Assembly: GCA_964035545.1 (NCBI GenBank)
Contig: OZ037768.1
Span: 3,938,741-4,002,740 of the forward strand
Length of the DNA stretch: 64,000 nucleotides
Direction: 5' to 3'
DNA from: Bugula neritina
Lineage: Eukaryota; Animalia; Bryozoa
How positions within the stretch are numbered: position 1 is the first letter of the stretch; each line of letters starts with the position of its first letter. The notes beneath the pieces are model-generated. The model did no database searches. It had not been told where the DNA came from and worked only from the letters and a program-made list of their open reading frames with translations. The translations under genes were made by a program, and so were the position numbers. Shown here piece by piece: positions 18,801 through 58,267 of the stretch.

Positions 18801-21800
18801 TTCAGCAAAACAAACAATTTCCATACTATAAGTTTTAAAATAGATTGAAACTAAAATAAAGATGGTATAATAGCTGATGCAAAATTCAAGCTCCTAAATA
18901 TTAGCTAAAATTACATTTGGGTGAACTAAATTACGAACAAGGTGAATTATTTGAAACAAAATGATTTCTACTTGTGAAACTAAACATAAATATGAATAGT
19001 TAGAATTACCATTAGTGATATTGTCAAAGCCTAGCACAGTCATGTAGCACAGAGCCAGGCCCAGTCCTGCAAACTTTACTTCATAACTAAAATATATTCT
19101 CCATCCATTCTTGATAATGATGAAAGCGGAGAACATCTTCTTGCATGTTGTTGAACCTGTTTACAAGTAAAAACTACACTTAACATTCAGCAACATTTAA
19201 TAACTTTTCATAGTTCACATGCAAAACTAACACTTATCAATTTTTCTCAAATATAATTAATATCATAATAAAATTACTCACGGTATATAATGGAGTAAAG
19301 CAAATTGTACTTAAACCATCATCTCCCTTTTAAACATAGGTTGATGAATCTCACTTACACGTCTGTGACTTTGTATGAGCAGAAATGGCTGATTTTGGCT
19401 GATCATCATCCTCAGTATCTTCATGGAATTTTACATCCTGACTTTGGTCGTCTACCGCCACTGAGGTTTCAGCTTTTGGTGATACTCTGACTTCCACGTC
19501 ACTATTTTTGAGACCATCTGAGTTGAGATCTTCATTCAACTTGCTCTCATCTGCATCTAAAACAAAACACAATAAAGGAGTAGAAGTTTTATTCTAATCT
19601 GATAACCTGAATCTCTAAGTGGAAGTTCTGATTTATTTGTGAAGTATCTGTATCTGCTATTATTTTTTTCCACAAAATTACAAATTATGCAAAAAATGTT
19701 TAAAGTTTAATTCTTGTATAATGTACCACACATAGACATGAAAGTGCAAAGGGTTTAAAGCTGGCGTGAAACAACTATTGTATCAGCCTGATTTACTTAA
19801 AGATCAGCTGAGAATGTAAAAGAAAACCTCAACAAATGATAAATAAAAATATTATATGCAATATGCACTTACTCCTGTTCATAGAAGTATAATAAGCACC
19901 AATGTAATAGACTACTTGGCCATAAATTCATATAAAAAACATTGGCAATTCACTGATTTCATAAAAAAGCGCTTGCAAGAAGTGTAGATTAGCAGTGAAA
20001 CTCACACAACCCAGGCTATAAAACTTTAGGTTGTAAAATCTGTGGTGACTATTTGTGGTTTAGCTACCAAATTTCTTATTAATGTAATAATTAGTTATCT
20101 ACTTGCACAAGCATGTACATTAGGAAGTGTTCAAGGAAGCAAGCATTGACTAATCAATATCTCAATGAGATATGATAGAAATCTTAGCAACACTCTGAGA
20201 ATTAATCACAGGAGAGGTACAACCACTACCTCAAATTCTCCCATCAGCGTTGGGACAGAATGACTTGCAAGTTTTTAAGCCAAAATATATTGGCAGATTG
20301 ATGAACATTCGGATGTCAACTAGACAATGGTGATTTCAGGATACAGCTGGTTTGTGATAGTAGTATGAGTAAACTTAGCTTCCCTGACACCTTATCTATA
20401 GGCAATCACGTACAAAACCGCGGGTCATGTGATCAAAACATATAGCTCCATGATGCATTTTAAATAAGACCATTTTTCTTGTGGACCCATTAAATTATTT
20501 CTAATTATGTCTTTATACACTTTATTGCAATTAACAAAACGATTAAAAATCATTCAAAACAGCAGCAAATGAACTTTATACTAAATTTAGTAGCGTTGAA
20601 ATACTCTATAGCTTGTATCTTCACAAAGAGAACTAAAATCAATTTTTCTGCTGGCATAAATGTGAAAAGCTCAAACTCAGATTTCATAACTAAACTCGCA
20701 CCACAGAAATTTACCAAGTTACTTTCTTACCATTGAGATTTTCTGCAGATTGATGCTGTGTTGGTTCTACTGTTGATTCTCCATCTAGAAAAAATATATA
20801 CACATTAAATTAGTAGCTGCCGCAAAAAAAAACATAATATTTACAAATAGTTTGCTAAACTTACAAATCGCGGAAGAATTGTCAAATAGAATTTCATGAA
20901 ATATTTTTATGCAATTCCATTTCAATTGTTTTATGTAAAACATTAAAGGCGTATAAAAAGCGACTGGTTGAATAATTAAGAGTTGTATTCTTTAGGCTTG
21001 AAAATAAGAAGTGCAGACAACTTCCATGAACAACTCAAGCTTATAAAATCGAGTGAGTTGAGTTGTATTACTCCATACATACCCTGTTTGACGTGCTTGA
21101 CTGCAAGTTGTGGAACTTTGTTATATATTCGAATGAGTAGCCTGTACTCTATAATCACACTGACAATGTTCCACACCGCCACAAATATGGCGCTCATCAT
21201 ATTTGTCCCGACACTCATGATGAACCCCGTGAGGATGGGTGCCGTGACGTTAGTGAACTGGTCTATGGCTCTCATAGTCGAACTTAGTTCTGTGAAAGAA
21301 ATTTTGAATTCTTTCATCATGTGAATAGTGGACTAAATTTTAAAAATTAAAATCAATACTATCATAAAAAAAATAGAAATTTAATAATATAGTAATTGCA
21401 GTAAGAAACTAGCGCCCTTTAAAAATTTCTCGTTACATTTGTGCATTATTAAAATATCCATATATATCCTTACTGTCACCTACAGGCTGCTTCAGCGTTG
21501 TATGTCCAAACAATTTTGTTCTATATTAAAATTTTGTGCACACATGTCTAGGATTTATTCTGAGTTTTGTGGTAAAACTAATACTAAATGTTGCTAACTT
21601 TCATAGCATGCTAGTCTCAGCTGCTGCAACACACAGCTCAATCGTTAAGCTGGCCCAAGAGTTTCAAGTCTGTAGATGATAGCTAATATATAAATGAATA
21701 TTTTAATACAACATAAATGTAACATGTGGGGGGGGGTGCTAATAACCAAAAATTATAATTGAGACTTATATAACACTTATTCTAAATAATATAAGTAGTT

Positions 21801-23760
21801 TTCAATAAAATAGGCAATAGTGTTATGTAAAAGCTGACTGGCTAACTTGGCACTGTTCCCTTCACATATAACAGATGTCCAATCTTTCTCGACGGAGATT
21901 TTTAGTGCGGTACTAAACAACGAGGCTAGAATAGAGATCAAAATGACGCCAGTTTCACAAAGGGTGGATGTCCAAGCAGCGCTGTAACAAAAAAGACGCG
22001 CAACAGCATTATGCCCAGTGCACATAAACAAGTAATACTGAACTCAACTCCACTATGTAACTGCTGTAAATATTTAGAAGAATTTATGACCTTAAAATAA
22101 ATTGTTAGTGTTAGCCTGTTGAAAACTGACAATGAGTTCGTCAACTATGAATTGAAACCATGAAATATAACATTTCTTGACAAGCTGAAGACATCATTGC
22201 TGTGATTACCTGAAAAAATGTTAAATTTTTATATTCTATTCTCATATTTCAGCCTGAAATATTCGAAACATAAAACAACATTTCAACTCCACTACATCAT
22301 CAATGGCTATTTATACACACCATAGTTTCAAAATAAAATCCTCAAGAAATGCATATACAATTAATCGTTGTGTTTTGTTAAATATGGGGCCAAATAATGT
22401 AAATATCTTTTTGCAACTAATAAAAGACTAATTTGCTTTAGTGGCTAATTAATTTGAATAGACTATGATCTTATACTGTAGATCTCGTTTACTGTTTGGA
22501 CTCTTGAACCTCTCCTTAAAAGAAGATAAACCCTACTGTAGGACACACATTCATAATGTTAGTACTAACTCATAAACTTCTGAATGCCAACTCACCTGTA
22601 TATAACTGCTTTATAATAGTATATCAGACACACTAGAGCTGCACACAAAGCAACTAGAAGATTCTGGAAGGCCAGGACTGTCCGTGCAACTACAACAATC
22701 CAAATTCTCTGTGTAAGCCTGCATAGCATGTTATAAGTCATAGAAACTATACAAGTATGGGAATGTATTAGAATTTAGATCGTCACAATAATCTAAATAG
22801 TTTTAGAATGGCATATGTTAGAAAATGCACTCATTTATAAAATGGAAACATGAAGCATATATAAGCAAACTAAATATAGTAGTAATCCAACATTATTAAA
22901 TAGCACTCTATAAAACTAACAAACTACCAGCATCAATCTAATGGCCGGAAGCCTGAATTGTTTCACGAGTAAGCTGATAAAATGCTAGCAAAATTGAAAA
23001 TCCAGATGCTGATAAAAATATTGAAAAACTTCGGTGTTAGAGGACACTTGTTACCAGTCAGTCTAGGGTACTTGTCAACCATGTCGCCAATGAGCGCGCC
23101 CAGTAAAACAGCGGCTATCCCACGAGAAAATCCGAAACCTGCCACCAATCTAAAACTTCCGGGGGAAAGGTCTACTAGGTAGAGACCAACTGCAAACTGC
23201 CACATACGATCTCCCCACGAGGACAGAAAGTGACTGACGTACAGTGATGCCGCAACGCTTTGTGTAAAAGAAGATATTCGGTTGCATAGTGGTTGCTTGC
23301 GTGCTACAACACATAGTAAAATAATTATGGTTTTCATTAGTATTTACAACTGCTAAAACATTTGAATACTAGTTGAGTACACTAGCAGATTTTTTCAAAT
23401 TAATAAATGATGCTATGCCATGTAAATATTTAAACAATACAGTACAATATTTAACTATGATATCCTATTATTTTAAAGATTTAAAAGAAAGTCAACACTA
23501 AAGATGTACTGCAATTATATTAGCTCCCAAACTTAGGGGGGGGGGTCACAATTTAATAAAATATGAAAGACATGTGTTAACAAAACATATTAATGTATTA
23601 GGCTATAAGCATATATAAGTTTATTTTAGATAGGCTTTGAAAGAGCAACAACTTAATATTTACCATCAGAATTATCATGAGGAGGCGTGTCTAGTCCCTT
23701 TGAGGTCTCGCCATTTTCCATTGCCATTGTGCCCCTTATTTGGGCCTCATCTTCAGCCAT
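12852..23760 (-). CDS. SLC40A1: Ferroportin (iron exporter, SLC40A1), 12 coding exons
   Basis: Exons approx. 23664-23760, 23055-23303, 22596-22689, 21840-21983, 21083-21290, 20731-20784, 19358-19556, 19010-19156, 17358-17472, 15956-16085, 14644-14784 and 12852-13226, with consistent phases. Signature motifs: LYVSHFLSSWGDRMWQF, VEKDW, MRAIDQFTN, YMTVLGFD, GYAYSQG, RFGLWSLDL, RGVVNGVQSSLN. Confidence 0.95.
17520..17700. repeat. (TA)n / TTTA compound microsatellite in a ferroportin intron
   Basis: Directly visible. Confidence 0.9.
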
Positions 23761-27692: not shown

Positions 27693-30600
27693 TTATCGCC
27701 TATCAGTCTTGCCAGACTTTCGCTTTCCAGAGAAGAGATGTTTTGGCTTTTTGACGGCAATATGGCGATCTGACTCTCCCATCTTTCCAAACTGGTTCAT
27801 CTTCCTCTGACTAGTTTTATGCATTTTTCTTGTTTGTGATGCCATCTACGAGTGAAATATAATAAAACTAGAACTAGACTGTGCAAAAGTGTTTACGCCA
27901 TGCTGTAGCTGAATATATGTTACAGCAACAGGAAATGTTGCACATGATGCAGAAGTATACATAGCAATAAGGTTATCAGCCTGGTAAACACAGGCTTATA
28001 GATTAAAAAACAGTCATGTTGATGGACTGATAATTAATAATAGAGTAAGATTTGGTGCTTTTTTACTCTTTTTTGAGCATTTTAAATAACAAAGCCATTT
28101 CACTGCAAGGATATGGAGCATGTATCAGCATGTAAAGAAATATATCAACAACCAAAACGCGGCCATGCAGCTTACCGACACATCCCTAACACCAGACACA
28201 TCACGTGGCACTTTAGAACTACTTCGTATCACTCCCTCAGAATCTTCTCTCTGTCGTTTGAGTGGACGACGAGTCTCACTTCGAGATCTTGTCTTGCTGA
28301 AGTGTTTCTAGGAAATAATACGAGATCAGCGCTTGACAAGCACACAAAACAAACATAGAGATTATATCTTCAACAGTTGAGAAAAGATGGCAGGAAGAGG
28401 TGTGGTGGTGAAGCAGGCCTTACCTCATCATCTGACTCCAGCTCCACGCCCAGATCGTTCATCTGCGACTTCAGTTTCTTCCCACTCATCTTCTCAGCTG
28501 TTCGCGGCAGTCTTGTCTTGATTCTGTGTCTTTCTTGTGCTTCCTTCTTCAGTATCTGACGTCTTTCTCGTATTCTACAGATATTATAATGTGTGAGTCA
28601 ACATGCACTTATTGAGGTACAATTGAAACTAGAGGCAGACAACTCTCAGGAATAACTGCACCGCAGGGAATATGTAACTTTAGTAACCACCACCATGATC
28701 GTCTTAAGGCCAGAACACACAACACCCAAATCCAAGCCAAGCACGGAAAGACGGAAAAGACTACTAACACCATTGATTTTCTCTTATGTAGTGTATTCTG
28801 AAAAATTGAAGCTAAGCCAAACCTGGTCAAAGTTCAATCGTATTTCGACCATCAAAATTCAGCTACACCATAACAACCACTACCAACAACAGAGTTCTAA
28901 AGCTACTGAAGCTACTGTTTACTGAGTGAACATTGTTACAACAGACTGCTTTAAAACTGAGTAAGCCAACAAGTTACGTCTGAATATTTACTAACTTGTC
29001 GGCTGTTTTTCTGATAGTAAGCGTCTCCTCATCTTCTTCAGAACTCTCGTTATCATACACACCGGCCTTCATCCTCATGTCCTCCTCACGCTCCAGGGCG
29101 TCCAGTTTCTAACAACATACAGGACCATAATCAGCAACCAAAGCTTCACACAAGTACAACCTCCTTCTATCAGATGCCTGAAACGCCTTAGTTTTCCTTA
29201 GCTTTTGTTTGACGAAAAATGCTGTTCTAACTTTGCACTTCGAATTCAAATTGCAAAAAACAATTAGAATACATAATATACAAGTATAACACTGGTCAAC
29301 ACCGAATATTATGTAGATAAATTTCATGGTAGCAATACACCTGACAAAAGAAGTTCGCTATAACCTATGCCTTGAAACAATATTTTAAAAGCTATTAAAC
29401 TGATAAACAACTACAGATTTACACAATAATGTTGAGTTTTAGTGAAGCTCACATTGCACACTTCAAACTTGAAGATATTATATACTATAGTACGTATTCA
29501 CCCACCTCCATAATCTCAGGATCTATATAGTCGGCTATGTTTCTACCGGACCAGATCTCTGGAATTACATCTTGCTTCCACTCATCATTCTTCAGATCCC
29601 AGTTTTCTGTAAGCAGCAGTTGACTTGCATAATCAGACACACACATAATGTTTATAAATTACGACAGAATTTTATTTGTAAAACATCTCACCATCCAACT
29701 AGTTTCATACGTTTCTAGGCAACTAACATGATCAAAATGCCCGCATTAGAAAAAAGACACATGTAAAATAGATAGAAATTATGAGTGAAGAGAAAAGCAC
29801 TGCATTATGAATAATAGAAAGCAGCATGTAAACTTAAAAGAATTGTGAATATACAACTTACTCTGTAAGTCCAGAATGTACTCATCACCCATTTCCAGTT
29901 CAATATCTCTTTCCTACCAACATGCGATGTAGTGTGTAATGGTGAGTAAGCAACGGTATATGTTACTACACAGCATATGTCAATTCAAATAACATTAGAC
30001 AAGCTATTAACTGTTGACGAATGAGTTCTTACTTATTTATTATATCATTGGGTAATTTAGTGTTGTAACGGTTTAATAAATAAATATTTTTAGCACATCC
30101 ATCTAACTTTATATTTGCTATTACAGAACATGTATATTACACATCATGACCAGAAAAACGCATCCAACTATAAAATGTTTAAATTAAACCTACCAGAACC
30201 TTCTTCTGAGCCTGAACTGCTGCTTGACCCTTCCTTTTAGCCAAGACACCAGGTGGTATGCAAGGAGGTCTCACCTGCACACAGAAGTATAGGTATAGAT
30301 ACATTTTTCAACATTAGAGGTAGTACAAAGCAGCTTACTATAGAAAGTATTGCAGTTTAATCATATTATTTTAATCCTACAACTTGACAACTATTGCATA
30401 TAATCTTTCACACTTCAGTTTCCAACAATAGTATAAATAACAAACATGCATGACTGTGCTTATGACACTGCAACGTAATTATATATGTATATTCTCACTA
30501 GATGCAAATTATGTTAAGAAACAATCGAGAAATACCACATTCGTTCACTTGCATAGTTTGTTACTAGCAGTTGAAAGTCAATTAAAAAAAAATTCAGAAA

Positions 30601-33600
30601 TTATTTAGACGCACTAAATATAAAATTAGTTTGTAAATGCATGGAACCAGTAATTTTGAAAATGTAAATATGCCACATTTCGTTAACACAAGCTAATTAC
30701 ACGTTAAGCAGGCAACCTATTGGAGGAGACTACACCACCCGCCATACCTTCTCATCTCTTTGTGCAGGTAAAGCCACATGCAGCCTATTCATGATGTCAT
30801 TGACCTTTCGACCTCTAGCCTTAGTCTCCACACGAACGGCCAGGAGACGGTCACACGCTTCAGTCTTCACTTTCATTATCCCCTCCTCGGTTACCGTACT
30901 CATTGGTAGGACTGGAATCTTCTCAGCTTCAAACTTCTTGAAAATCTGAACTCAAAATTTAACATAGCATATGACTAGACAGCAGCCACGGGGAGTGAAT
31001 ATTACAGAGTTTGTATGTGTTGATAGAGCAGGGTGACAGCAATGCAGGTGGCAGGAGATGGTCAATAGCTGAATTTAATGACACATTTAATGCATATTAC
31101 ACTGCATTCCTGAAATACTGGACATCACTGCAGTGTAATAGATGAAAGTACAGTTAGCATTACCCTCCCTTCATTATATTATTAGATCAGAAACATAAGT
31201 TGCGTGTCTCCTATTACCCTGATAAATATAAAACCAGTGTAGGCCGATAACATTTGGTTATTCAAACAAGAATGAAGATTTCAACTTTGAAGCGTATAGT
31301 GCTTCAAATAGTTTAAATCAATAAATTATCTTACAAACTTTTCATAGTAATTTTATCTGCACAACATTAAAGACGAGATATTTACCTCAATAGCATCCGG
31401 AGAAAGCTCATCAAAGGGTACAACATCCACCTTGTTGGCGCAAATCATGAGTGGCTTGTTTTGGAACAGTGGCTTGATAGACTCAAACAACTCGTACTAA
31501 ATGTTAAAAAGTAGAGTTAATGTTAAATCTACGAGTTTCTAATGACAGTAGAATTAATAACATTATGAAAATCAGTGAATGGAAGACAAAATCTCAACAT
31601 ATAGTTTACAATTCATGTCAATCTGCCTCAAGATAGTACTAAATATAGCAACACATGCAGGCTATACTAGAGTTACCAGCACATGAAGATTATACTAGAG
31701 TTATCAGTACATGTATGCAAATTATACTAGAGTTACCAGCACATGCAGGTTATACTAGAGTTATCAGCACATGCAGGTTATACTAGAGTTATCAGCACAT
31801 GCAGGCTATACTAGAGTTATCAGCACATGCAAGTTATACTAGAGTTATCAGCACATGCAGGTTACACTAGAGTTATCAGCACATGATGACAACTGATGCA
31901 AGGTTTCTGACAGCTCACCTGCTGACTCAGGTTATAACCACATAGCTCTGACACGTCCATTACGTAGAGCACAGCGGCTCTGAGATGGGCCAGGGCTGTG
32001 ATGGCTTGCATCTCAATGGTATTCCTGTCCTCCAGGGAATGGTCGAGGATACCAGGAGTGTCTATCACCTACAATGTCTACTGCTGTGTGAGATGCAGTG
32101 CAATGTAATACCTCATAATGTATACATAATGCAACTGCAATTGTGATACATCTCTCAGCTAACATACCATGTCATTCACGCTGACAGTTTATTGAACAAC
32201 TTCTTTAATGAGCCGAATCTTCATTTAGAATATAAAATTATATCTATTTATGCAGATATAAATTAATAATTGGGAGTCAAATTGAGTCCTAAATTTTATT
32301 TTGTTTAGCTGTCGGCAAACATAGTACAATGAGATGAATGTGTTATGGGACAGTAATATGGAGAAGTTTGTATAGCAAAATTTAGCTGTTGCTAAACATA
32401 TGGAACATTGAACTAATATACTGACCTGCCAGCGGAGATATCTGTAGTCCATGTGCCCCACATACAGAGACTTTGTGGTAAAGGCGTAGGGCTGCACCTC
32501 AACATCGGCCCGAGTAACCTTGTTCATGAAGCTAGATTTCCCAACGTTGGGAAAGCCACACACTAGCAGAGTCCTGGTGTTTGGGTCTATAGAGGGAAGA
32601 CGACTCAAATGTTGCCTGACCTGCTCCAAGTAGGTGAGGGACTGATTCTGGCGTTTCATTATGGTGCACATTCTAAAGCAGAGTATTACATGTCAGTATG
32701 AAATGTTACTATATCATTACAAAAACTAACTGGTGTCTGTCTAAAATCTAAATTTTTCCTTTAGAAATAATAATGTGGAGTAGAAAACCAGTTTTATAAG
32801 GGTTTTCTACTCCACATTATTATTTCTAAAGGAAAAATTTAGATTTTAGACAGACACCAGTTTTATAAGGGTTTTCTACTACTTAATATTATAGTCAAAA
32901 TGTGATCATAGTTACAGACCCTCACAATTCAACTTGAGCTATTACTTAGCTATTGTCCTCTCCCTCTCCTACATAGTCCTAATAGCAAGTAAAACTAGAC
33001 GATGAACATGGATCATGTATTTAACCGTATTACTAACAAGGAGTAAACTCTACCTGCCAAGAGCTGCCTTCTTCAGCTGCTTGCACCTGTACAGAGTGTC
33101 AGCATACTTGATCAGCCTCGAGTAATCCTTGGCCACACTGCAGGAAGTAACAACAATATCATCAACAGATTACAGATTACTGCTATACAGGTTGAGGAAC
33201 AGCTACTCCAATACAACAAATACAGCAACATGCATTGCCAAAAGAACTTCTACTGGAATATATTAGCCTGGTTAGAGGAGTGCAAATAGTAAATGAAACA
33301 CATGGGAAGAAGTAGAACAGAAATACTAACTTATCTATGAGATGCCTGGCCGTGTTGATCTGCCCCAAAGCTAGCTTGTAATGATCCCTGTCATACAGAA
33401 CATTCATCAAGTCTGCATAGAATGGATGAATATCCTACAAAACACACACAGAACTGTGTTGAATGAACAATAAAACTCTATCTAAAGGTGAGATATAATG
33501 ATTAGAGCTTCTGATCCAGTTTGAAATTCGAAGACATCGTTTAACCATGACTTTCAAATAGAGGTCTATGTGCTCACATCTAGTTTGGGAAAGTCCTCCA

Positions 33601-33908
33601 GAATTTGAGAGAGCTTATCATGGAAGTTCTGTTGGGTGAATTTGACTTTTTTCATATAGAACTGTCTTATTCTACCTATGGCATATTGTTTGTGGACTTC
33701 GGTAGGCGTCTTTCTTTGTGTTTTAGACAATATAATGTCAATAAAATCCTGTAAAATGAAAATAAAAACACTATTAGTCACAATACATCCATTAAAGGAA
33801 ATGGAGAAATAAAAACAAATTTCACATGCAAAAGTAATGTTACAGAAATAAAATATTTACCTTTGACGTTGGGACAACAATAATCTTTTTAAAGTTATAC
33901 TGCGACAT
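27693..33908 (-). CDS. GTPBP4: Nucleolar GTP-binding protein 1 (NOG1), about 15 coding exons
   Basis: Starts [16 protein letters not shown]|[16 protein letters not shown]; G1 [17 protein letters not shown]3 DTPG, G4 NKVD; ends [18 protein letters not shown] (TAA at 27693-27695). Introns are GT-AG. Confidence 0.97.
28670..28875 (-). ncRNA. Candidate box H/ACA snoRNA in a GTPBP4 intron
   Basis: On the host sense strand: a 5' hairpin (TATG/CATA, GTGTA/TACAC, CTGA/TCAG, TGGTCGAA/TTTGACCA), a hinge AGAGAA matching ANANNA at 28779-28784, a 3' hairpin (TTAGTAGTC/GGTTACTAA, CGTCTT/AAGACG) and ACA at 28673-28675. Confidence 0.5.
31650..31885. repeat. Minisatellite, ~28-bp unit ACATGCAGGTTATACTAGAGTTATCAGC, about 8 copies, in a GTPBP4 intron
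   Basis: Head-to-tail copies with no spacers. Confidence 0.93.
32728..32880. repeat. Perfect 62-bp inverted repeat with an 11-nt spacer, plus a 25-bp direct duplication
   Basis: Arm 32728-32789 is the exact reverse complement of 32801-32862. ACCAGTTTTATAAGGGTTTTCTACT occurs at 32787-32811 and 32856-32880. Confidence 0.95.
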
Positions 33909-35049
33909 GATTTTGGTGATGTTCTCCAATGAAGTTAATATCTATAAAAAGAAATAAAAAACAACAAATTAATCCTGAATAAATGAGGAATAAATCAAAT
34001 GCATGTATTAATAGCATACTTTTCATTACTCCAACAACTAGTTTACTGGCTAATGCTAAAAATAAATTTAATTAGCATTACCAAAACTAATTTTTAAACT
34101 TAAATCGAAAACTAAAATAAAAATTAATTTGAAAAGCAAATGTATCAAGACATGACAGTACAATGTTAATTATAATGAAGATCAGTATGAAACAATCATA
34201 ATGTTGGCTTGAGCTTTTTTAGTTTATAACTACTAAATTAAATTGAATTGATGGCTCATGCCATAATGATAATGATAACTTGAGACCCCCAGCATCAGAC
34301 TCAGCTTTGAAATAAAATTTAATGGCAATAGGCACAGCAAAAATAGCTATCAGTATAAATATTCCACGTTTCAATTCAACCTTAAAGTATTAAGTTTAAC
34401 TTCAAGTTGTTAACTATAACTTAGTCCCAAGCTTAAACTTAAACTAAACATCAATTTCAAACATGAACATGATGAACTTCAAATTAATTTTAAATACGAA
34501 TACTATAGTAACACTAACTCGCTAACTGTCTAATAGTAAATGTAATACTAATAGTGTAATAGTAATACTAATATAATATTAATACTGAAAGAAACTAGTA
34601 GTAGTACTACTAAAATATTATATTAATATAAATCTAAATAAAAATCAAAGCTGCAACTGTAAAATTAAAAATAATTATAATACCAAGTCTAATCATCATA
34701 ATGTCAATAAGCAATAATTAAATAGACAAAATAAAAATGAAAATTAAATTGAAATTAAATTTGCAATACTATTTCAAATAACACATTTAATAAATGACTG
34801 AGTCACATTCAATTTCATACATTTAATAAATCACTAAATTTTAATAAAATTAAATCAAATGACTTAATCTACATCATTTATGATTTATAATTTTATACCC
34901 TAAAAAACACACCACTAAAGATTCAGTAGTATTTGTTCAAAACACATTACAGTTGACTTATTGTAGGGCTATATGCTCAACTGAATGAGAAACGTAAAGC
35001 AAATTACTAGGAGTACATGTGTTTCAGTTAATGCTCAGCCCCATGGGAA

Positions 35050-35200
35050 TTAGCTCTATAATATAATTAATAATATCTATAGAGCACGTGTGGGTATTGA
35101 AATGACATGCGTAGTGAACGTTTCCTGTTCCGGTTGTGACGAAACAGGAGGTTAATTCGTAGCAGTAGCTAGATATTTCGCGAACTTATTTTTTAACCGC
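35050..35200. promoter_or_regulatory. Probable bidirectional promoter between GTPBP4 (-) and G6PC-like 1 (+)
   Basis: CpG-containing island between head-to-head genes, with E-box CACGTG (35085-35090), ETS-like TTCCGG (35128-35133) and E2F-like TTTCGCG (35176-35182). Confidence 0.5.
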
Positions 35201-35284
35201 TTTTCTGTTGTTTCACCTTGGACTTTTTATTTTTAATTGCATTATATTTGATGACAACGAAATGTACCATTAATATATTATGCT

Positions 35285-38200
35285 ATGGCAACCATAAAAC
35301 TAATCCCATTTATAGATTCTCTTATAAAGCCCATATATGTCTATGGAATAGAAATTATTCAAGCATCCCAAAGAAACTTTAAGGTAGGGAAGCAAAATAT
35401 CAACATATTTAATTTTATTATGCATTAAAGAATAAAATGTAGCAAGAAGGGTTAGTTGACTTAAATAATAATCAGTATTATGACAAAAATGTTTTCAAAA
35501 TATTTGTATCAGTTAGGACTTCCACGTCATTGACAATTCAATTTGAATTTATTTTATTTTCTAATATAAACTTTCAATGATTGTCAAACATCTTCGATTG
35601 TTTTATATTCTTTATTTTTGATAACAGAGTACTATCATTTAAAAAAAAGTTGAGCTTCAAAATACAAAATAGGATTATTGAAAGTTGTGCCTTTGCTTTA
35701 TTATGAGAATGTGTTTACTGTTAAACATTTCAAGCTGAAATTCAAATTGACTGTTAAATTAACTACTGTACTATTAGTATTACTATAGCCCTTGTCATTG
35801 TACTTAAATATATTGACATATGCTTATTAGTATTAGTTTACTATATTTCCTGTTATTCAACACAATCAGACTTTCTTATAGTCCCAATTCCTGTATATAA
35901 TTTATAATCTAATTAGATTTTTGAAAGCCTATGACCTTCATTTACCTCAAGCCGTGCTGGCAATATAGCCTTAGGCTAAGGGCTTTAAAATTGTACAGAA
36001 GAAGCTTCAATAAAATTAGTTTTTGGTGTCACCAATAGATTTTATAGAACATAAGTTATAGAAACTACCAGCTTAGCACTATTTAGCCTACTAATGGTAA
36101 CTACCCCTCTATCATTAATTATGTTATTTTTTCTTTTTACTAAATTGTCTAGAAAATGTACCAATAATAATAATTAACTATGGTAGTTGTGAAAATCATA
36201 TGAATAATTATTGTAAATTAAGTTATTATTAATTAATTTAAGTGAAGTTCAAGAAATAACCATTTTTCATTGATTGTTAGTAAACACTTTATTGAAACTA
36301 GCCTCACTAGCCACATGTTTTAATGCAGGTATGGGAGTCTCTACTGTACAACATTTATCAGCTGGCTGATCCATGGATGGTTTATTTTATCTTTTTCCCA
36401 TTAATTTACTACAACAACATGCGAATGGGTCTGAGGATTATATGGGCTACAGCAGTAACTGAATATGTTTGCATCATATTCAAACTGTAAGCTATCTATT
36501 ATTATAAAGCAAAAACGCTCACAAAATTTCTAAATGAATTATACTTTTAACCGGATTCTAAATAGGACTAAGGACTAAAGCACAGTTTTTTAGTCACTAA
36601 TTTTAATTTCTTGACCACATATGTCATCTTTTAGAATGGTCCATGGTCATCGTCCATACTGGTGGATCTATGAATCTCCATACCACATTACAGCTCCCCG
36701 AATCGGCCAATTCCCTTGGACATGTGAAACTACACCTGGTTTGGCATTGTTTAATTAACTATAAAATTGTGTTTATAAATAAGCTAATTTTGTCATTTTA
36801 TCTGCTTTTAGTGATGGACATAAGTCATTACTAATATCAATGCCCATAAAGAAATAACTTTTTATCATTGTACAAATCATGTTTTATATTCTTATACTAT
36901 GCAAATATTCTGTAACTGTAGTTCAATTATTAAAACACACACAACTTTTTTTTAAATAATACTATTCTAGCTTACCGGAAGATTGTTGAAGTCAATATGT
37001 GAATTACCATTACGTATTTCCTCATGGAAAATATTATCTTATTGTTGACACATTTATAAGCTCTGGTTTGTTTCAGCAACTCCTTCTGAACGAACTATGG
37101 TGACAGCCTGCATCAGCTTTATACTCCTTCAGCACTTCTGTAGATGTAAAGGACTTTCAATGCAGTGCGAGTGAGTTGAGCTACTTATTACTATGTTCAT
37201 CTAATTTGTTGTATTTTATTGCTATTCTGTTTTAAATTAAATTTAATTGAAACTTGAAATTTTTGCATTAAGTATTGGGATTTCTTACACTTTATATAAT
37301 TTTGAATTCTATTTTTTTAAATATATTGTAATAAATGTTGCTGCCATAATGATTATTGTAAGAATAGTAGCATTATGATGTCAACAGAGCAAAACATTGC
37401 TAATGCTAATGTATGCCAGTAATTAGTTGTAGTACCACCCACTTTACCTCACATTTTCCTATTTTACCAAATTTTGTCATTTTCTCATATTTTTAGCTGG
37501 CAGAAGTATTTGCTAGTGTGGAGTGGCTACTATCTCCTACAGTTACTAATAATCATAGCTGGAGCATTTTTTGCCACAACATTTCCTCACCAGGCTATCA
37601 TTGGAACACTTATGGGTAGATGCAATTTACGTTACTAATTGCAAATATAATTTGTTTTAGATTTGTTAATTACATAACTTCAATGAGTGGATGTTGCACA
37701 AAATCATAAGAAGTTATACGAAACTATTGTTATGAAAATTCTGATCCTCCATTTAGTAAAATAGGCACTATGATTGGTAAATATTGTTCACTTTTGCAGG
37801 CAGTATGATGGCAAGAAGGTTTGCTAGAACTAATGTCCTCGAAATATCCTTTGCTGGTTTTACTTGGATGATGTTTTTTATGATTTCACTATTTTCTATG
37901 CTGAATGGTGCCATGTGGGTACTCGGCCTTGACCCCACCTGGTCAGGTACTAAGGCTTCAATGGCCTGTATTAAGATAGCCTGGATGGACATCTACAGAA
38001 ACATGCTTGTCGAAGACACCATCAGAGCTTCCGCAATGATTATGGGTAACCATGACAACAGTTTCTGAATACCACTTTGGTTATAGTTCAAAACATTTTT
38101 AGTTATAAAAATTATGTTATAAACATTTGGTTCATTTTAGTTATATTTATAAATTAGAAATGATATATATGGTGATTACTCTATAAACTTTAAATAACAT

Positions 38201-39493
38201 CACATGACTTCTACATTTACTATTAAATTTTTTATAGTTTCGCAATGACCAAGAGATCATGTTTTGTTGCAGGGATGGGTCTGGCTATACGATTTTTTAC
38301 TGCAAACGCCCTGAAGATTACTGATGGGTGTTTGACAAAAGTCAAGCTGGTGCACGCCGGTGTTGGTATCATCATCATTGTCATATTCGAGGCTTTTGTA
38401 CAACCGCCATTCTCCACCTCTCCATCTCTTTACTATCTGTTCAACTTTGTGAAGTACACAATTCCTCCTGTACTCATTATTACAGACATCCCATTCATCA
38501 CTGGACTTGGCAAAGTAAGTAGACGTGTATATACAGTATATACGAAAAGTAGGTAGATGTGTATATACAGTATATATGAAAAGTAAGTAGATGTGTATAT
38601 ACAGTATATATGAAAAGTAGGTAGATGTGTATATACAGTATATATGAAAAGTAGATGTGTATATACATATATATGAAAAGTAGGTAGGTGTGTATATACA
38701 GTATATATGAAAAGTAGATGTGTATATACAGTATATATGAAAAGTAGATGTGTATATACAATATATATGAAAAGTAGGTAGGTGTGTATATACAATATAT
38801 ATGAAAAGTAGGTAGATGTGTATATACAGTATATATGAAAAGTAGGTAGATGTGTATATACAGTATATATGAAAAGTAAGTAGATGTGTATATACAGTAT
38901 ATATATGAAAAGTAAGTAGACGTGTATATACAATATAGTGGCTACTATTATGTATAATTAGGAATAATTACATTTTTAGCTTTTACATATATTACCTAAA
39001 ATTGAAATATTGAAATTTGTCATACCAACATCAAAATTTTAAAACAAACGCATTTTCAAAGCTGAAGATGTTGTGTTATCTAAATAATCATATAAAAAGA
39101 TAGAATTCAACTCAGCTGGATTATTATAACTTACAATTATGAAAATAAATGAATTTGAGTAGCTAAAATAATGTATGCGGAGCTTGCTATGTTTGTCTCT
39201 CTACCACTAGTATTGCTGATGTGTAATGGCTATTGCAGTTGATCAGTGCTGGTATAGTTGATGACAACCCCAGGTGTTTCACTCATATGAAAGGTAGTCC
39301 AATGAATCCAGTTAGGGAGGGGGAGGGTGTACCGTCCCCTATTGATCAGGATGAGTATTCTACTCCAGGGGACTTCCACCACCCAAACCATAGCAATAGC
39401 AGTAAAAAGGTGAGTGATGCAGAGTTCATTCTTGTAAGCCAATTGTGTTTTGACGAAACATGCAAAGAAGCAGTTGAATCTTTCGCCGGGTGA
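35285..39493 (+). CDS. Glucose-6-phosphatase (G6PC/PAP2 family)-like protein 1, predicted catalytically inactive; 8 exons
   Basis: Exons 35285-35383, 36329-36486, 36635-36738, 37077-37170, 37497-37615, 37800-38045, 38273-38514, 39239-39493. Motifs LADP, FKLMVHGHRPYWW, QFPWTCETTP, FPHQ, GLDPTWS and KY..PP. Four introns match the human G6PC1 positions and phases. Confidence 0.9.
38515..38935. repeat. Minisatellite, 30-34-bp unit GTA(A/G)GTAGATGTGTATATACAGTATATATGAAAA, about 12-13 copies, starting at a splice donor
   Basis: Tandem copies begin at the GT of the exon-7 donor; accounts for the spurious ORFs 38433-38933 and 38498-38761. Confidence 0.95.
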
Positions 39494-40519
39494 AAATTGA
39501 AGTACCTCAAAAAGCTAAAATATAAAAAAGCTATTTGGAGAATAATTGATAGTTTCGCGCACTTCTGACTGATTATACATCTACAGTTTTTAGATGACAA
39601 ATAGCATTTGCCTTTGTTGTAGCGTACTAGAAGTAAAAGGCGCTAGAAATGGAAGTAACAGCTGTTCTTCTACCTTGCCTATTACAGCAACAGAGTAGAA
39701 TTTTGTGCTGTATACAATGTTCAAGTGAAAGATGATGCTTATTTATTCACAATCTTCCTATTTATGTTGAATGTAAAGCCTTCTAAGTGTCTATTTATGT
39801 GCAACTTTTCTCAATGGCATGTTTTGAGTTGTCTACTCTTGATTTTAATGTAACCTTTGATTGTCTTCTAAGTTGTTATTTTAAGATATTATATGATGTA
39901 AAATATAACCTTATGCAAACTCATATATCTTTGATTTGCTATAGTATGCTACTTGAACTTTATTGAGTTAAATTGTCACATACATGCATGCATACATGCA
40001 TACACATGCACAAATACATATAACTACACACATACATATATTATAATATATTATATTCATTTCTATGCAATGACAACTTTTTCTTGAAATCTTATTTTCT
40101 TTTTTATTTTTCCAAACAAAACACATGTTCCTGCCATGTAGATTTTTGCATAATTCTAGAAAAATAATTTATACGTAGCACGTAATTAGAATTTTTTAAG
40201 TTCATTTACATCAAATTATACATGATGGTTGCTGTGTTATATCTGCAACTTCAGTCATGGTTTCTATAAGAAAAAGTAACTCTAAACGAACTTAAAGGAC
40301 TCAAATCAACAGTGATCGAGTTGGCTATTAGCAGCCATTGCTCACATTTTTTCCAATTTATTTCAACCTACAAATCACTATGTTGCTAGTATTTTAGGAA
40401 TGAACAATTATTAAACAAGTAAACAATTAAATCACAACAATGGCTAGTAATCACTTAGTTTTCAACTAGAATTTCATTAGGCTGGTCTTAAACTGTGTTT
40501 GTTTCACACATTATTCAAT

Positions 40520-43500
40520 ATGATTTGGGTAAAGGCTACTATCTACTTCATAGAGTCTTTAATTAAGCCACTATATGTTAGTGGTATAGACATCATTGAA
40601 GCTGTGCAGACGAGTTTTAAGGTATAGTTTTATTTATAATTATTTTTATTTTATATATCAATATGACTATAATTATTTATATTATTGTAATTAACTATAT
40701 TATCATATATTTTATTCTATTACATATTGATATGATTACTTCTAACAGTTTCTAGAAGATAACAGATCTAAATCATTTTGTATAGTTGTATATTTAAATT
40801 ACATATGTTGTACATTATACTAATATACTATTAATGTAACTAATTATGTTACCATATATCATAATTGTATTATGTGGTCACTGCTTACAGCCTTTTAAAT
40901 AACATTTTGTATTATTAAAAAGATAATAGAGCTAAAAATACAGTTGTAATTAGTTTGCTTCCTATTTTACTAGCAATAATTAAAAAGCAATTTGAAGTTG
41001 TCTGAAATTGCAGGTTATACATATATTGTGTGAAAGAAATACCATTTATATCTCGATCCAAGTTGTAGTTATGTCAAAACTAGCAACATATTAAAATTTA
41101 AAAAATAAAACGGAATTGCCTCATCCAAATTTACAAGTTATAACTTATAATTGTTGAAACTGCTTACGAGTAATGTCTATACACTTCCGTAATCATTGTA
41201 GATGTGGCAACCTCTTCTATATGCAGTATATCAGCTGGCTGATCCATGGTTTATGTATACTATACTATTTCCTGTCATATACTACCACAGCATGCGAATG
41301 GGGCTCAGACTAGTTTGGGCTGCTGCTGTCACTCAATACGTCTGCATGATATTCAAACTGTACGGACTATAACTTACGACTTTTACTTACGTTCATTGTT
41401 CATACACGAGTGTTGGTTTAATAATATACTTTTAAAAAATTAATTTCAATGTTCACCTATTTTGAAGACCTCTTATCTTTATTATGTTTGCAGATTGCTA
41501 CATGGACACAGGCCTTATTGGTACGCCTATGAATCAATATATCATATTTCAAGTCCAAAAATAAAGCAATTTGAATGCGAGTCAACTCCAGGTAAAGAAG
41601 ACAACTCCAAATAAGTAAAACTATATTTTGTATTTTTCTGTGTGTGTGTGTGCGTGTGTGCGTGTGTGCGTGTGCGCGTGTGCGCGTGTGCGCGTGTGCG
41701 CGTGTGCGCGTGTGTGCGTGTGCGTGTGTGCGTGTGTGCGTGTGTGTGCGTGTGTGTGTGTGTGTGCGTGCGTGCGTGTGTGTGTGTGTGTGTGTGCGCG
41801 TGTGTTCAATTATATTAATAATTATTATTACATTACTTTCAGCCTGTCCATCGGAGAAGGTTATGGTTACTGCCTGTATTACACATATTCTTGCTGAACA
41901 TTACTGTAAGTGTAGAGGACTTTCGGCACAGTGTGAGTAAGTTGTCACTACGACTTAAAACTTCCACACCTTCTATTTAATTTTTATTATCATACAAGAT
42001 TTCTTAGCAATGATTACAAAGGACTATGGTTTATAATAGCTATTTTTAGAACAGCATCGCCATATAAAAGTATACTTTTTTATTTCTGTTCTTTTTATGA
42101 ATTTTACTACATTTATGATATATATTAAATTATTCAATTATTCATTTTCAATACTAGTTCATGGTAAACACCCAAATTAAGTTGCATAAATTTCAAAGTT
42201 ATGGCCTTTTGTACAGGTTTTTATTTTCAAGTCTTCGTATTACAATATATTTACATATTTGTTTATGTTTGTAGAAAATACAAGTTTATCTTTGTATGGT
42301 TTATATATGGTGGTATTCAATTACTTCTCTTTATAAGTACAGCATATATGGCTTCCACTTTCCCACATCAAGCTCTTCTCAGTACTTTAATGGGTAAGCT
42401 CATACTAATATATCCTACAATAGAAACAGGGCTTGTATTAACCAATATTTTTTAGAAAATTTGTTATAGTTTATATAGCTCAGGTCTATAAACCCAAAAA
42501 TATCTGCAAACTGTTAGTAGTCATTTGATATTTATCTTCCAGTAAGAGTTTCGTGTACTTTACAGCATTCTGATGCTTAGATGGTTTTGGTGGTAGTCAG
42601 CCTATAACTAATTAGTTTTATGTAATGTACAACTTTTTTTATTAAAACTGTTATTTGCTTCACTTAGAATCTACATAACCAAACAAATTGCATGCAACTA
42701 CACTGCACCATGGCACAACTTCATATTTTTTGTATTAGGAACTTTAATATCAAAAAGAATGTATCGGACCAATGTATTGGATATAACATTCACTGGGTTT
42801 GCATGGATGATGGTTTCAATGTTGAGCACTCTGTGTGCCACCTACACAGTATTGCAATGGATTGGCTATGATCCAGCCTGGTCTATGACTAAGACCTCAT
42901 TGGCCTGTGCCAATATTGTATGGAAAGATTTGGAGAGGTACAAGCTTGTAGAGAACGCAATTCGAGCTTCTGGTTTTTTGACAGGTGAGCTAATTTCAGC
43001 TCAGCTGCTGTTACAACACATTATACAATAAAATGTATATTCACAAAATTTTAGGTTCAAGCTTTTACATAATTTGTAGTCAAATTAACACCATCTCACT
43101 GCTGACTCAGATTCCTTCAAATGCAAATATTATATAAACTTATTAGTCTTTATAAACTAATACCATAAATATGTTGTACTATAATATAGTTCATAATATA
43201 ATATAAAGTGCATGAGTTCTTATTGACTGTTGTTGTAGGAGTGGGGGTATCCATATCCTTCCTCAACTTTAAAAGTTTGAAGATCACAGATAAATGTTTA
43301 ATAAAGGTGAAAATAATTCACATTTGCGTCGGTATTGCGTTTGTCATACCACTTGATCTCTATCTGCAGCCCCCTGTACTGTTACACCCAGTTGCCCACT
43401 ATGTCTTCCAATTCATTAAGTATGCCATACTCCCTAACCTTGTCATCAATGATATACCAATGATAACAGGAGTGAGCAAGGTACAGTATTTTCTAATCTT

Positions 43501-43898
43501 AACACTTGTTTACTGTACATTATATTCTAATCTTAACGATTGTTTATGTTAAAAACTTTTATTGGATTTGATTTATTGCTGATTTGATACTTTTTAACAC
43601 ACTCTGTTTAATAACCTAGATTATTTTCTATCTATAGTTGCTGATAGCAGTGATTTGTGAAGGAAGAAATAAAGATGAAATATTTAAAAGGCTCTCTGGA
43701 GATCCAATGATACAGTCAACTGATGTGGTAGGGGTCCCATGTCTTCTCAATCAAGGGGAGTGTGCATTCTACAAGAGCTGTGAGAAGCCACACCCACAAG
43801 ATGAGAAGCCACATCCACAAGATGAGAAGCCACGCCCAAAAGATGCTCAGTTTGTTGAAAGAACGCCACCAGTAAGTATGATACAAGCTATGTTATAA
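40520..43898 (+). CDS. Glucose-6-phosphatase-like protein 2 (tandem paralog), predicted catalytically inactive; 8 exons
   Basis: Exons 40520-40621, 41202-41359, 41494-41591, 41843-41936, 42275-42393, 42739-42984, 43239-43480, 43638-43898. Same exon structure as copy 1, with [28 protein letters not shown] and GYDPAWS. Confidence 0.9.
41638..41805. repeat. Alternating purine-pyrimidine (TG/CG)n microsatellite filling most of a G6PC-like 2 intron
   Basis: Directly visible; accounts for the spurious ORFs at 41621-41940. Confidence 0.95.
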
Positions 43899-44576
43899 GT
43901 ATAAACACAGTGAGAATTGTAGTTGCATATATAGGCGTTAACAGAAGCTACTATCCTTTATAGAAATTGTTGAACTTGATTTCTTTTTGAAGATGAGGAA
44001 AAGGAAGAAGAGACTTGTGAGACATCAGGAAGATATGGCACACCTTTAACTGTTTGATGTTGGGTTACTGGTCGGTGATGATCACAGCTGTCACCTTGGA
44101 GTATTTTATGTAACATTATCTGTACCAATAAGTTTATTGTTAATAATAAATTGCTATATATAACAAATTGTCTCAATTATAGCTTTTGTGTATTTCTGTA
44201 AAACAAGATCAATAATCAGATAATAAGGGTAGGAAATATCTTCACAAATTTATATAGTCATATAGCTGCTGTATAATCGGCCATCACAATTATGCTCTTG
44301 AATTTATGAAATCCGTTTGATTTGAGGTTAATTGTACATTGCGAAAGAATTAATGTAAATATTAGCCAACAGCTCTAATGTTTCATGTGTTTGATTTGTT
44401 CTCTATGGATAAATTTCAATTCAACAAAAACACAACCCGTTAGAACACGGCATGCAAGGCTGTTGAGATGCAGGTACTTAGCATGAATCTCAATAACGCC
44501 AGGATTGTTAAATATGTAATGGCTACGTTACCACTCTGTGATTTTCTTCTTATATAGCTGTAATATTTGAACGATT

Positions 44577-47500
44577 ATGGTAAGTGATTTTAGAGCCTTC
44601 ATAGCCATAATATATTGAACGTGAATTGTGATAATAGAAATACAATAATTGAATCAATTGAATTATTTTAGCAGTATAATATTATCTGCTTGTATTCTTA
44701 TTTTGCTAGTCTATATGTTGGCTTATTTATTGCATGTTGGTTTTTTTATCAATTTATTACCAAAGTCAATGTTATTAATAAAAAATCATAAAAAGAAACA
44801 TAATCAAACTTTAATAGCATAACTATTAGCATTATTCATAAATGTTTCTCAGTTACTATCTGTGAAAGCCTATAATTAGGGTTAATTCTAAATGTTTATT
44901 AGGTGCTTATCACAAGTGTATTATGATTTCAGGCTCAAGTTGAACAAGGGGCCGACTTCAGTAGGATAAATCACGTGATACTGGAAGATGAGGAAATATC
45001 AGACGACTGTCAGAAAAGTGCGGATCACTCACCACAGCTGCCAAATGGCAATGTGATGCCAGATAAAGTAGCTGCATACAGAAAAAATGCTAAAAGTACT
45101 CTTGTCAAAATTAGAAATGCTCAAAAATTCATTGCCCGTATTCGAAATCAGATGTATGAGTTACGGAAACTAACTGCTAAAGACAAGGCCAAACATTATA
45201 TAGGCCAAAGCAGAAAACCTGGTAGTTTGAAGGTATTTCGAAAATATTTTATGACTTCTCAGTTTATTTGTTCAATAAAGCACTTAGAGTTAAATAATTT
45301 AATCACCTTAAAGTATAAAGAAAAGGTTAGGAAGCAGTGATGGTTCAAGGGACGCAGCGTTGACACAGCATGACTCAAACATGTGCTAGGTCTTGTTTCA
45401 AATCTGTGCATAAGTGCTAAAAACTAACATATCCAATTAGAATTGCTCCTTTGTCATAGTAAAAATGTCCTCAAACCGTGTTGCTAGCATGGTGGGTGGT
45501 ACAGCCTTCAACAGGCCACTTAAAAATCTAGCCGTGCACCAGGGTTTCTCACAAGTATGAAGACATTTAATAATGGAGCTTGCTGTAAGAAAATAGGTTC
45601 TGAGTTTATGTAATTATGGATAATTTAAGAGTTTTCTCATTTGGTGATTACTTTTTATTCCAATTTGGTGCGGGTCATTCTGCTATGACAATTTATGAAA
45701 CAAATTTATGTCAGACAGCTGCTGCTGCACTTCTACTGCACATATATAAACAGCTAACCATAGCAGGTCAAATAGTATAGCTAGCATTATATGCATAGCA
45801 AAAGCATCAGTTATGCTGGAATTATTTAACCCTGTACGTTGTTAATTAATGTAGCTTATAAGTTATAAATACTTCAATTTTATGAAACTGTAGCCTATAA
45901 CGCTGCCCAAAGAACATGGGTTAGATAAGAGATCATCAATGGGAAACATGGCTTCATTTGTGGATGGTAACACTACCCAACCCAACTTGCTAAGACAGAG
46001 GATGAGTAGAGCAGATCTATTTGCCAGACAATCCATTACAGGTTTGACAGGATCTGGAAATTTCCCAGAGGTTCATAACAGAAAGAGAATTAGAAAGAGA
46101 GTAGGTGTAGCATGTATAAATATAATACAGTAGAACGTTGTAACTATGTAATATTAAAGTTAAATTGTACTGTTTGATAAATACAACACACAATGTTGTT
46201 TATTTATTATAAACTCAGTATACATATAATATGCTAGCAGTAAATGTTGAATGTTATACGTAAACAACATAACTAGACAACTATAGAACTTATATTTGCT
46301 GTACAAATCTCATATACATTAGTAACTGTATATAAAGTAACCATTGCTTATAACTAAATATAACTTATAACGATATATAACTAAGATTCAAACCTGGGAT
46401 CTTCAGCTTCTTGGTTTTAAACTGAAATTAGATTTATAATTAAATGTTATTACATGATGTATTGCAACTTGTCAATTTCCATCACCAAATTATTAAAGCT
46501 CAAAAAATTCTATCAAAACTAAAGTTTTAAGAGAATAATTTGGATTTTTCAAATTTTATATATTATTTTAATGTTTCATTGTCATTGCTTGCCTCTAAAA
46601 TTTTTTGATGTTGTCATAGAGACCAGATTTAGGAAGAAAGTTCAAGGCTGCAGCCTGGATATCAATATTAATACGGAGATTATGTCTAGCAAATTTAAGG
46701 TAAGTAAATAATATTTATACATGTTAAGTTCATTAGGATAATCATTAGATTCAGGTCTAACATGTTGTATGATGATATTGCACTCCAGTCATCTAACTAG
46801 CATAACATGTTGGGATATTATAGCTTAAACCACATCACTTACATTAAAGTCAGTTGTGAAATTAAATTGATTGAGTTTTTGAAAAGTAATTGATAGGGGA
46901 AACAGGATTTAATTCTTATGAGCTGTATACATGGGCATTATAATATAAACAGATAAAACCATTAGAGTGCTGCTATAGTCTAAACAGATATCGTGCAAGG
47001 ACATGTATAACATGATGATGGCCATTTGTGTATTGATTTTATACTATTCTATGTGAAATTACCAGCTTGAATACCATTGAACATGAGCCTGTTCTATTTT
47101 ACTAGTTGTTTATGAATCACACATTGCCCATTACATTTTTAAAATAGCCTTTGTCTAATTCAAAAAAAAATTAATATTTATCTATTGTCATATGCTAAAA
47201 ATAGTTATAAGGTACCATTAAAATGAGAGAGAGCAAAAAGCTTAAGCTATTTATATACTGAGCTGCTCATAATGCCTTGATCACGAAGTAAAAACTATTA
47301 TTGTTTAAATATGACTTTTGTACATAAAGTATGTTAAATAACATACAAGGTTTAGTGTATGTAACAGTTAAGTGATCTGTGTAAGTTAGCTTTGCCAGTA
47401 GCAACCTGGTGTTAAACAAACACATCATTACAATGTATGTTTAATCAGTTAATGAATCAGGTCGATTATTTTGTTCTCGGGGATGGGAAAATCAATCAAA

Positions 47501-53769: not shown

Positions 53770-58267
<4,498 letters not shown>

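Follow-up and report, generated by a model that had tools for sequence, protein, structure and literature searches.

The locus described here raises the question of what role the glucose-6-phosphatase (G6PC) fold can play once hydrolysis has become impossible. G6PC is medically central through glycogen storage disease 1a, neutropenia, and the control of fasting glucose. In the bryozoan Bugula neritina, whose genome is AT-rich (GC ~32%), the stretch from 3938741 to 4002740 of contig 4 within a 216,009,554-base assembly (64,000 nucleotides; hereafter the window) was searched and found to carry a tandem pair of plus-strand genes, copy 1 and copy 2, that derive from G6PC and have lost residues required for its chemistry. 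The best overall explanation, to which we assign a probability of roughly 0.7, is that these are two functional paralogous genes encoding conserved non-catalytic derivatives of G6PC; the general claim of a conserved non-catalytic derivative is, if anything, the safer statement. The pair look like an apparently undescribed family of enzymes turned non-enzymes, with an inferred function. Searches of a full-text library returned no account of a catalytically dead G6PC branch, nor of a bryozoan G6PC.

The descent of the genes was analyzed by similarity searches against the PDB, run exon by exon (phmmer and hmmsearch). Exon 3 of copy 1 (36635–36738; HGHRPYWW...QFPWTCETTP) matched G6PC1 chains only, at residues 79–113 (E 2e-6), and exon 5 (37497–37615) matched human G6PC1 at residues 153–186 (E 2e-3). 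Human G6PC1 was also the top match of exon 2 (36329–36486) at residues 35–76 (E 0.67), and G6PC1 that of an exon 6 profile made from seven sequences (37800–38045 in copy 1) at residues 203–254 (E ~0.8). Neither exon 4, used as a single sequence and as a profile, nor the exon 7 profile matched G6PC in the PDB, and no PDB match to PAP2 proteins of the LPP or PgpB type was obtained. The Pfam PAP2 model (PF01569) matches no single exon at E values up to 10, which is a weak test with the domain split over four exons, and a genome-wide PF01569 search does not reach this locus. G6PC descent is secure, because four collinear best matches fall on one protein; this bears out the true G6PC origin proposed in the initial annotation. 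The exon ends fall on G6PC1 residues 76/77, 113/114, ~148/149, and 187/188, with phases 2, 1, 2, and 1. The coding exons of human G6PC1, which we take to be 230, 110, 106, 116, and 509 nt long (357 codons in total), would put the four human introns at those exon ends.

In human G6PC1, the phosphate is held by K76, R83, R170, and S117, the chemistry is performed by H119 and H176, and the glucose contacts are D69, E110, and S260 (PMC11789071). The activity of the human H119L, R170Q, and H176A mutants is nearly abolished, and H176A still binds glucose-6-phosphate (G6P), as seen from a rise in melting temperature of ~16 °C (PMC11789071). Motif 1 (KxxxxxxRP), which contains K76 and R83, is retained in both bryozoan proteins as KLMVHGHRP (copy 1) and KLLLHGHRP (copy 2). 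The K76-equivalent codon of copy 1 is at 36482–36484, with exon 2 ending 2 nt later, and the R83 equivalent is at 36651–36653 in exon 3. In copy 2, the K76 equivalent is retained in exon 2 (41202–41359), followed by exon 3 (41494–41591; HGHRPYWY...QFECESTP). The equivalents of D38 (exon 2), E110 (exon 3), and S117 are also retained in both proteins, and that of D69 (exon 2) is changed to Glu in copy 1 and Gln in copy 2. Motif 2 (PSGH) has no match; in a positional alignment, it is replaced by PSER at 37082–37093 in exon 4 of copy 1 (37077–37170), by PSEK at 41848–41859 in exon 4 of copy 2 (41843–41936), and by PSDR in a distant relative, L034, described below. P116 and S117 are kept, Gly118 has become Glu, and His119 has become Arg (copy 1) or Lys (copy 2); the position of H119 was assigned by ungapped continuation from residue 113 and by the retained P116–S117. 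Motif 3 (SRxxxxxH) is likewise without a match in either copy. In the exon 5 alignment, human CLSRIYLAAHFPHQ stands opposite IIAGAFFATTFPHQ of copy 1, in which AGAFFATTFPHQ occupies 37558–37593, with R170 replaced by Gly (37561–37563) and H176 by Thr (37579–37581). In exon 5 of copy 2 (42275–42393; motif 3 region at 42336–42371), both residues are replaced by Thr. The retention of motif 1, the loss of PSGH and of R170, and the Thr at position 176 of both copies had all been read from the DNA in the initial annotation, and the alignments agree with it on each.

Judged from these alignments, neither protein can use the phosphohistidine chemistry of PAP2 enzymes, since each of the residues that donates the proton (H119), binds the phosphate (R170), or attacks as the nucleophile (H176) has been substituted. 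Hydrolysis of G6P is expected to be absent, because the human H176A, H119L, and R170Q mutants are inactive. Alternative exons that would restore PSGH or H176 had been named as a possible objection. The interval 34000–45000 contains no second sequence resembling exon 4 or exon 5 and neither PSGH nor HFPHQ in any frame; motif-restoring alternative exons are therefore excluded at the level of sequence.

Expression was analyzed using RNA-seq run X1, a single library of a 2016 "symbiont metagenome," compared with the window over 35200–41199. Two spliced contigs, 95 to 99% alike to the window, lie on copy 1. The first (781 nt) has joints at 36486>36635, 36738>37077, 37170>37497, 37615>37800, and 38045>38273, and the second (562 nt) has joints at 38514>39239 and 39409>39623 and extends to 39814. 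The seven joints are introns 2 to 8 of copy 1, all GT..AG and exactly at the predicted borders, and none of them occurs in DNA run X2. The first contig carries exon 4 with PSER, as 95 letters between joints read as 36737>37076 and 37170>37497, and exon 5 with TTFPHQ, the latter with one synonymous difference only. Copy 1 is thus transcribed and spliced as modeled. Exon 1 of copy 2, the sole copy 2 exon within the compared interval, has a depth of zero in run X1. Past 39814, the second RNA contig continues for 55 letters that do not match the genome; this loose end could reflect a further splice in the 3′ untranslated region (UTR), variation between strains, or a chimera.

The two paralogs share 50% protein identity, with pS 0.81 (saturated) and dN 0.43, in agreement with the substantial divergence noted at first sight. 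That each ORF remains uninterrupted over more than 400 codons despite such divergence argues against decay. A closer comparison was made with L031, a 15-kb contig from a JGI metagenome (JGI 3300002729) that carries the neighboring NOG1 gene and both copies and represents a sibling lineage. The DNA identity with the window is 87 to 90% across the locus. All 18 exons align, and the sole length difference is an in-frame 21-nt repeat unit in the copy 2 tail. The dN/dS ratio (omega) between the window and L031 was calculated by the Nei–Gojobori method, with exons 1 to 7 taken as the core and exons 8 and 9 as the tail. For copy 1, dS was 0.113 and dN 0.0067, giving an omega of 0.059 (bootstrap 95%, 0.017–0.128; core 0.044, tail 0.25). 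For copy 2, dS was 0.208 and dN 0.017, giving an omega of 0.083 (bootstrap 95%, 0.043–0.142; core 0.044, tail 0.18). Purifying selection is strong on both genes. Together with the spliced RNA of copy 1, these values support the view that the pair has been preserved since the duplication. One contig, L030 (JGI 3300003318; protein P0007), carries a copy 2 that is frameshifted in exon 6. L030 and L031 come from the same organism and differ by no mismatches, only by gaps (several internal deletions in L030); the frameshift is most likely an assembly artefact and not a broken allele.

The age of the inactivation was examined in more distant relatives. L034, found by a metagenome scan with exon 3 (GC 43%), contains a complete gene with motif 1 (K...LHGPRP), PSDR in exon 4, and ISSTFFASSFPHQ (SSFPHQ) in exon 5. 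This single-copy gene is flanked by NOG1 (minus strand) and by the gene that also lies downstream of the pair in the window, and each of its exons resembles copy 1 more than copy 2. The inactivation is placed before the duplication, as initially annotated, because this syntenic single-copy gene is already dead. On this comparison, either H119, R170, and H176 were lost before the duplication in Bugula, or a pair that was already inactive went on to lose copy 2. A search of 1.84 billion representative proteins with the exon 6 profile returned eight exon-sized fragments only and no full-length annotated protein. The exon borders are the same in the relatives' contigs, and the exon structure is kept in four contigs other than the window. 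The exon 5 motifs of L005 (ILAECFLATSFPHQ), L006 (AIAGSYFATTFPHQ), and L007 (ILAGCFMATTFPHQ) are without R170 and H176; L005, like L033, comes from a marine-biofilm metagenome (sample SAMN08714533). In L028 (623–748) and L029 (362–487), from the JGI environmental metagenomes 3300022223 and 3300022205, the motif is LLGAAFLANHFPHQ, in which H176 is retained and S169 and R170 are lost, and an extra intron splits exon 6. Exon 4 was searched for in the upstream DNA of L028 and is not on the contig. L028/L029 may represent an intermediate state in a stepwise loss of the active site. Across seven lineages, position 170 varies freely (G/T/E/G/G/A/S), whereas six have Thr or Ser at position 176 and L028 has His, and FPHQ is invariant. 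This pattern fits an early loss of R170 followed by the loss of H176, perhaps repeatedly. A tree built from exons 5 and 6 (seven sequences, with no active G6PC as outgroup) was too short to resolve this order and placed copy 2 on a long branch.

An active G6PC elsewhere in the genome was sought by a six-frame search of the whole 216-Mb assembly, exon by exon, behind a loose first filter. On the scale of this search, 43.6 bits correspond to an E value of 5.6e-9, and a match like that of human exon 3 (~30 bits) would still be reportable if it passed the first filter. Single-exon queries (exons 3 and 5) and multi-species profiles (exons 3, 5, and 6) found only the pair in the window. Weak matches of the exon 5 and exon 6 profiles elsewhere were checked one by one and judged to be noise. 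The PF01569 model finds ~10 other loci in the genome, which on inspection proved to be noise or other PAP2 genes and none of which has G6PC-like exons by local tblastn, and the coding pattern R-x5-HFPHQ has 0 occurrences genome-wide. Within the limit set by the first filter, the pair are the sole G6PC-family genes detected by sequence in this genome. In a survey of metazoan G6PC genes, as excerpted (PMC5297017), a single gene is given for arthropods, molluscs, and echinoderms, and the gene is lost in tunicates and cephalochordates; bryozoans are unmentioned in that excerpt.

Here, we propose a non-catalytic action, based on the retained pocket residues and a new charged pair beside them. The proteins would still reside in the membrane of the endoplasmic reticulum (ER), and their former active-site pocket would open toward the lumen. 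This pocket keeps K76, R83, S117, D38, and E110 and has gained a conserved acidic–basic pair (Glu/Asp118 and Arg/Lys119), and the non-catalytic role probably depends on it. As a specific mechanism, which we regard as possible rather than probable, the pocket may hold a sugar phosphate or another phosphate ester uncleaved, in the manner of human H176A, and its state may be relayed through the C-terminal tail. The added tail (~60–95 residues, with a basic last exon) is the obvious candidate for an output or sorting element.

The rival that survives best, although we consider it unlikely, is a scaffold whose pocket is occupied by the protein itself. The carboxylate of Glu/Asp118 would pair with K76 and R83 and mimic the phosphate, leaving the pocket without a ligand; the protein would serve only as a structural element or binding partner within the ER membrane. 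Copy 1, copy 2, and L034 all share the charged pair at positions 118 and 119, and R170, which contacts the phosphate directly, is absent, its position being free to vary. The G118S substitution disrupts the reaction center of human G6PC1 (PMC11789071), which also speaks for this scaffold. However, K76, R83, S117, D38, and E110 are all kept, beyond the apparent need of a pure scaffold, and the salt bridge to K76 and R83 is putative. A phosphate-ester binder and a self-occupied scaffold would fit equally well.

It is improbable that the proteins are still enzymes of another chemistry, with the hydroxy group of Ser/Thr176 or the His of FPHQ (H179) as the nucleophile for phosphate hydrolysis or transfer. 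The Thr or Ser at position 176 in six of the seven lineages is not random, FPHQ is invariant, and the constraint on the genes is as strong as that on an enzyme. Nevertheless, not only the nucleophile but also H119 (proton donor) and R170 (ligand) have been lost, and we know of no PAP2-family enzyme that works without the motif 3 histidine. The inactivity of human H176A (PMC11789071) points the same way.

The initial annotation suggested, besides a sensor or scaffold role that is hypothetical, a regulator of an active G6PC. Such a regulator or partner of an enzyme encoded elsewhere in the genome is very improbable. It is argued for by analogy only, from pseudoenzymes that modulate active paralogs, and it is left unsupported because the pair are the sole G6PC-family genes found: the exon 3, 5, and 6 profiles, the PAP2 model, and the motif pattern yield no other exon of the family. 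Decaying pseudogenes or mis-modeled exons, which the missing catalytic residues and the failure of Pfam PAP2 to match any single exon might suggest, are refuted for practical purposes by ORFs that are intact despite saturated synonymous divergence, by omega values of 0.06 to 0.08, by RNA spliced exactly as modeled, and by the exon structure kept in four other contigs.

Several points weigh against the interpretation of the pair as conserved non-catalytic G6PC derivatives. Because H176 persists in one relative (L028/L029), the losses occurred in steps or more than once, and certain members of the family may not function alike. The RNA evidence is confined to copy 1 and comes from one library, in the form of contigs, and from a strain 95 to 99% alike. 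The H119 call depends on positional continuity, since no significant match is obtained with exon 4 by itself. An active G6PC of very divergent sequence could slip through an exon-wise search with a loose first filter. The geometry of the pocket is deduced from a few aligned positions at the level of sequence, and the acidic residue at position 118 could itself fill the phosphate site and block a ligand.

A broader version of the non-catalytic interpretation, which appears doubtful, is that bryozoans have no glucose-6-phosphatase activity at all and that their single G6PC gene became a non-hydrolyzing luminal receptor early in the phylum and was later duplicated in Bugula. The ligands of such a receptor would be sugar phosphates or other phosphate esters, the added cytosolic tail would report the metabolite status of the ER, and the Bugula duplication would have given two specialized forms. 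If this is true, the family would be the first pseudoenzyme branch of G6PC and nature's equivalent of the H176A mutant, which traps its substrate.

Comparison with known systems places the pair most closely with G6PC1, G6PC2, and G6PC3 (human G6PC1 structures, PDB IDs: 9J7V and 9J7U). Common to them are the collinear similarity over exons 2, 3, 5, and 6, the G6PC-specific segment RPYWW...QFPxTCETxP, the KxxxxxxRP motif with S117, D38, and E110, and a multi-pass hydrophobic profile. Unlike these enzymes, the bryozoan family has changed H119 to Arg or Lys, G118 to Glu or Asp, R170 to Gly, Thr, Ser, Glu, or Ala, and H176 to Thr or Ser, and the bryozoan genes have three extra introns. They also carry the added C-terminal tail (~60–95 residues, basic at its end), in contrast to human G6PC1, which has only a short KKSL end. 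The family thus belongs to G6PC by descent, yet two of the three defining catalytic motifs have failed. G6PC2 (IGRP) is a G6PC paralog of much reduced activity with a regulatory more than a bulk metabolic role, but it retains all of the catalytic residues, and the bryozoan proteins do not. The PLPPR proteins (PRG1–5) are similar in kind: PAP2-fold membrane proteins that have lost catalytic motif residues, are conserved, and have added a C-terminal tail. However, PLPPR proteins are LPP-derived, vertebrate, and located at the plasma membrane, whereas the bryozoan pair is G6PC-derived, and no sequence relation beyond the fold was seen. Of the PLPPR analogy drawn in the initial annotation, the likeness of kind therefore stands and shared descent does not, as the PDB matches are to G6PC1 only.

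The locus can be regarded as a natural inactivation experiment, in which H119, R170, and H176 are gone, K76, R83, S117, D38, and E110 have long been kept under strong selection, and there is apparently no active copy. Its sequences offer a natural set for telling the catalytic residues of G6PC apart from those that bind ligand or maintain structure, and it adds to the picture of gain and loss of G6PC in animals. An automatic annotation of these bryozoan genes as "glucose-6-phosphatase" would mislead.

The gene models were refined at their ends. The initial annotation gave each gene eight exons; all eight are real in both copies, but the gene ends were wrong, and a ninth coding exon, predicted in the case of copy 2, had been missed. 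All introns are GT..AG, their phases are the same in the two copies, and there are no internal stops. Exon 1 of copy 1 (35285–35383) contains the start codon and 33 codons and ends in phase 0; it lies outside the RNA contig, and its start and sequence are kept in L031 and L034. Exon 7 (38273–38514) encodes the last membrane segments, and exon 8 (39239–39409) encodes the tail past them, under weaker constraint. The coding part of exon 9 (39623–39646), established by RNA and kept in L031, encodes RTRSKRR followed by a stop, and the 3′ UTR reaches at least 39814. In intron 7, a 34-bp minisatellite of ~13 copies (38512–38937) directly follows exon 7; it is polymorphic in length, with an allele 307 bp shorter in DNA run X2.

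In copy 2, exon 1 (40520–40621) was placed by an exon-border and phase test and is aligned in L031. Exons 6 (42739–42984) and 7 (43239–43480) are followed by exon 8 (43638–43871), which encodes the tail. A candidate exon 9 at 43993–44049 has an AG acceptor and encodes MRKRKKRLVRHQEDMAHL followed by a stop, with the frame and stop kept in L031. This exon is predicted; the phase-0 donor after 43871 is of the same kind as the copy 1 donor that precedes the RNA-proven exon 9. The tail of copy 2 contains an in-frame 21-nt (7-residue) repeat at 43781–43845, made of EKPHPQD units, with one extra unit in L031. Intron 3 of this gene holds a TG/CG-rich microsatellite (41639–41805) with an 8-nt unit, TGTGTGCG, in ~22 copies.

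Upstream of the pair, the gene of the nucleolar GTPase NOG1/GTPBP4 (28173–33912, minus strand; Pfam NOG1_N and MMR_HSR1) is head-to-head with copy 1, and the NOG1 neighborhood is common to the window, L031, and the more distant L034. Elsewhere in the window, ferroportin (FPN1) exons are found at 12855–23337 (minus strand; Pfam E 1e-18 to 1e-19), and a single-exon ORF of 455 codons at 5149–6516 (minus strand) encodes a receptor-like protein with several hydrophobic segments and no Pfam match. A (TG)n tract of ~1 kb at 56883–57910 is the source of the extreme GC skew at 56 to 58 kb.

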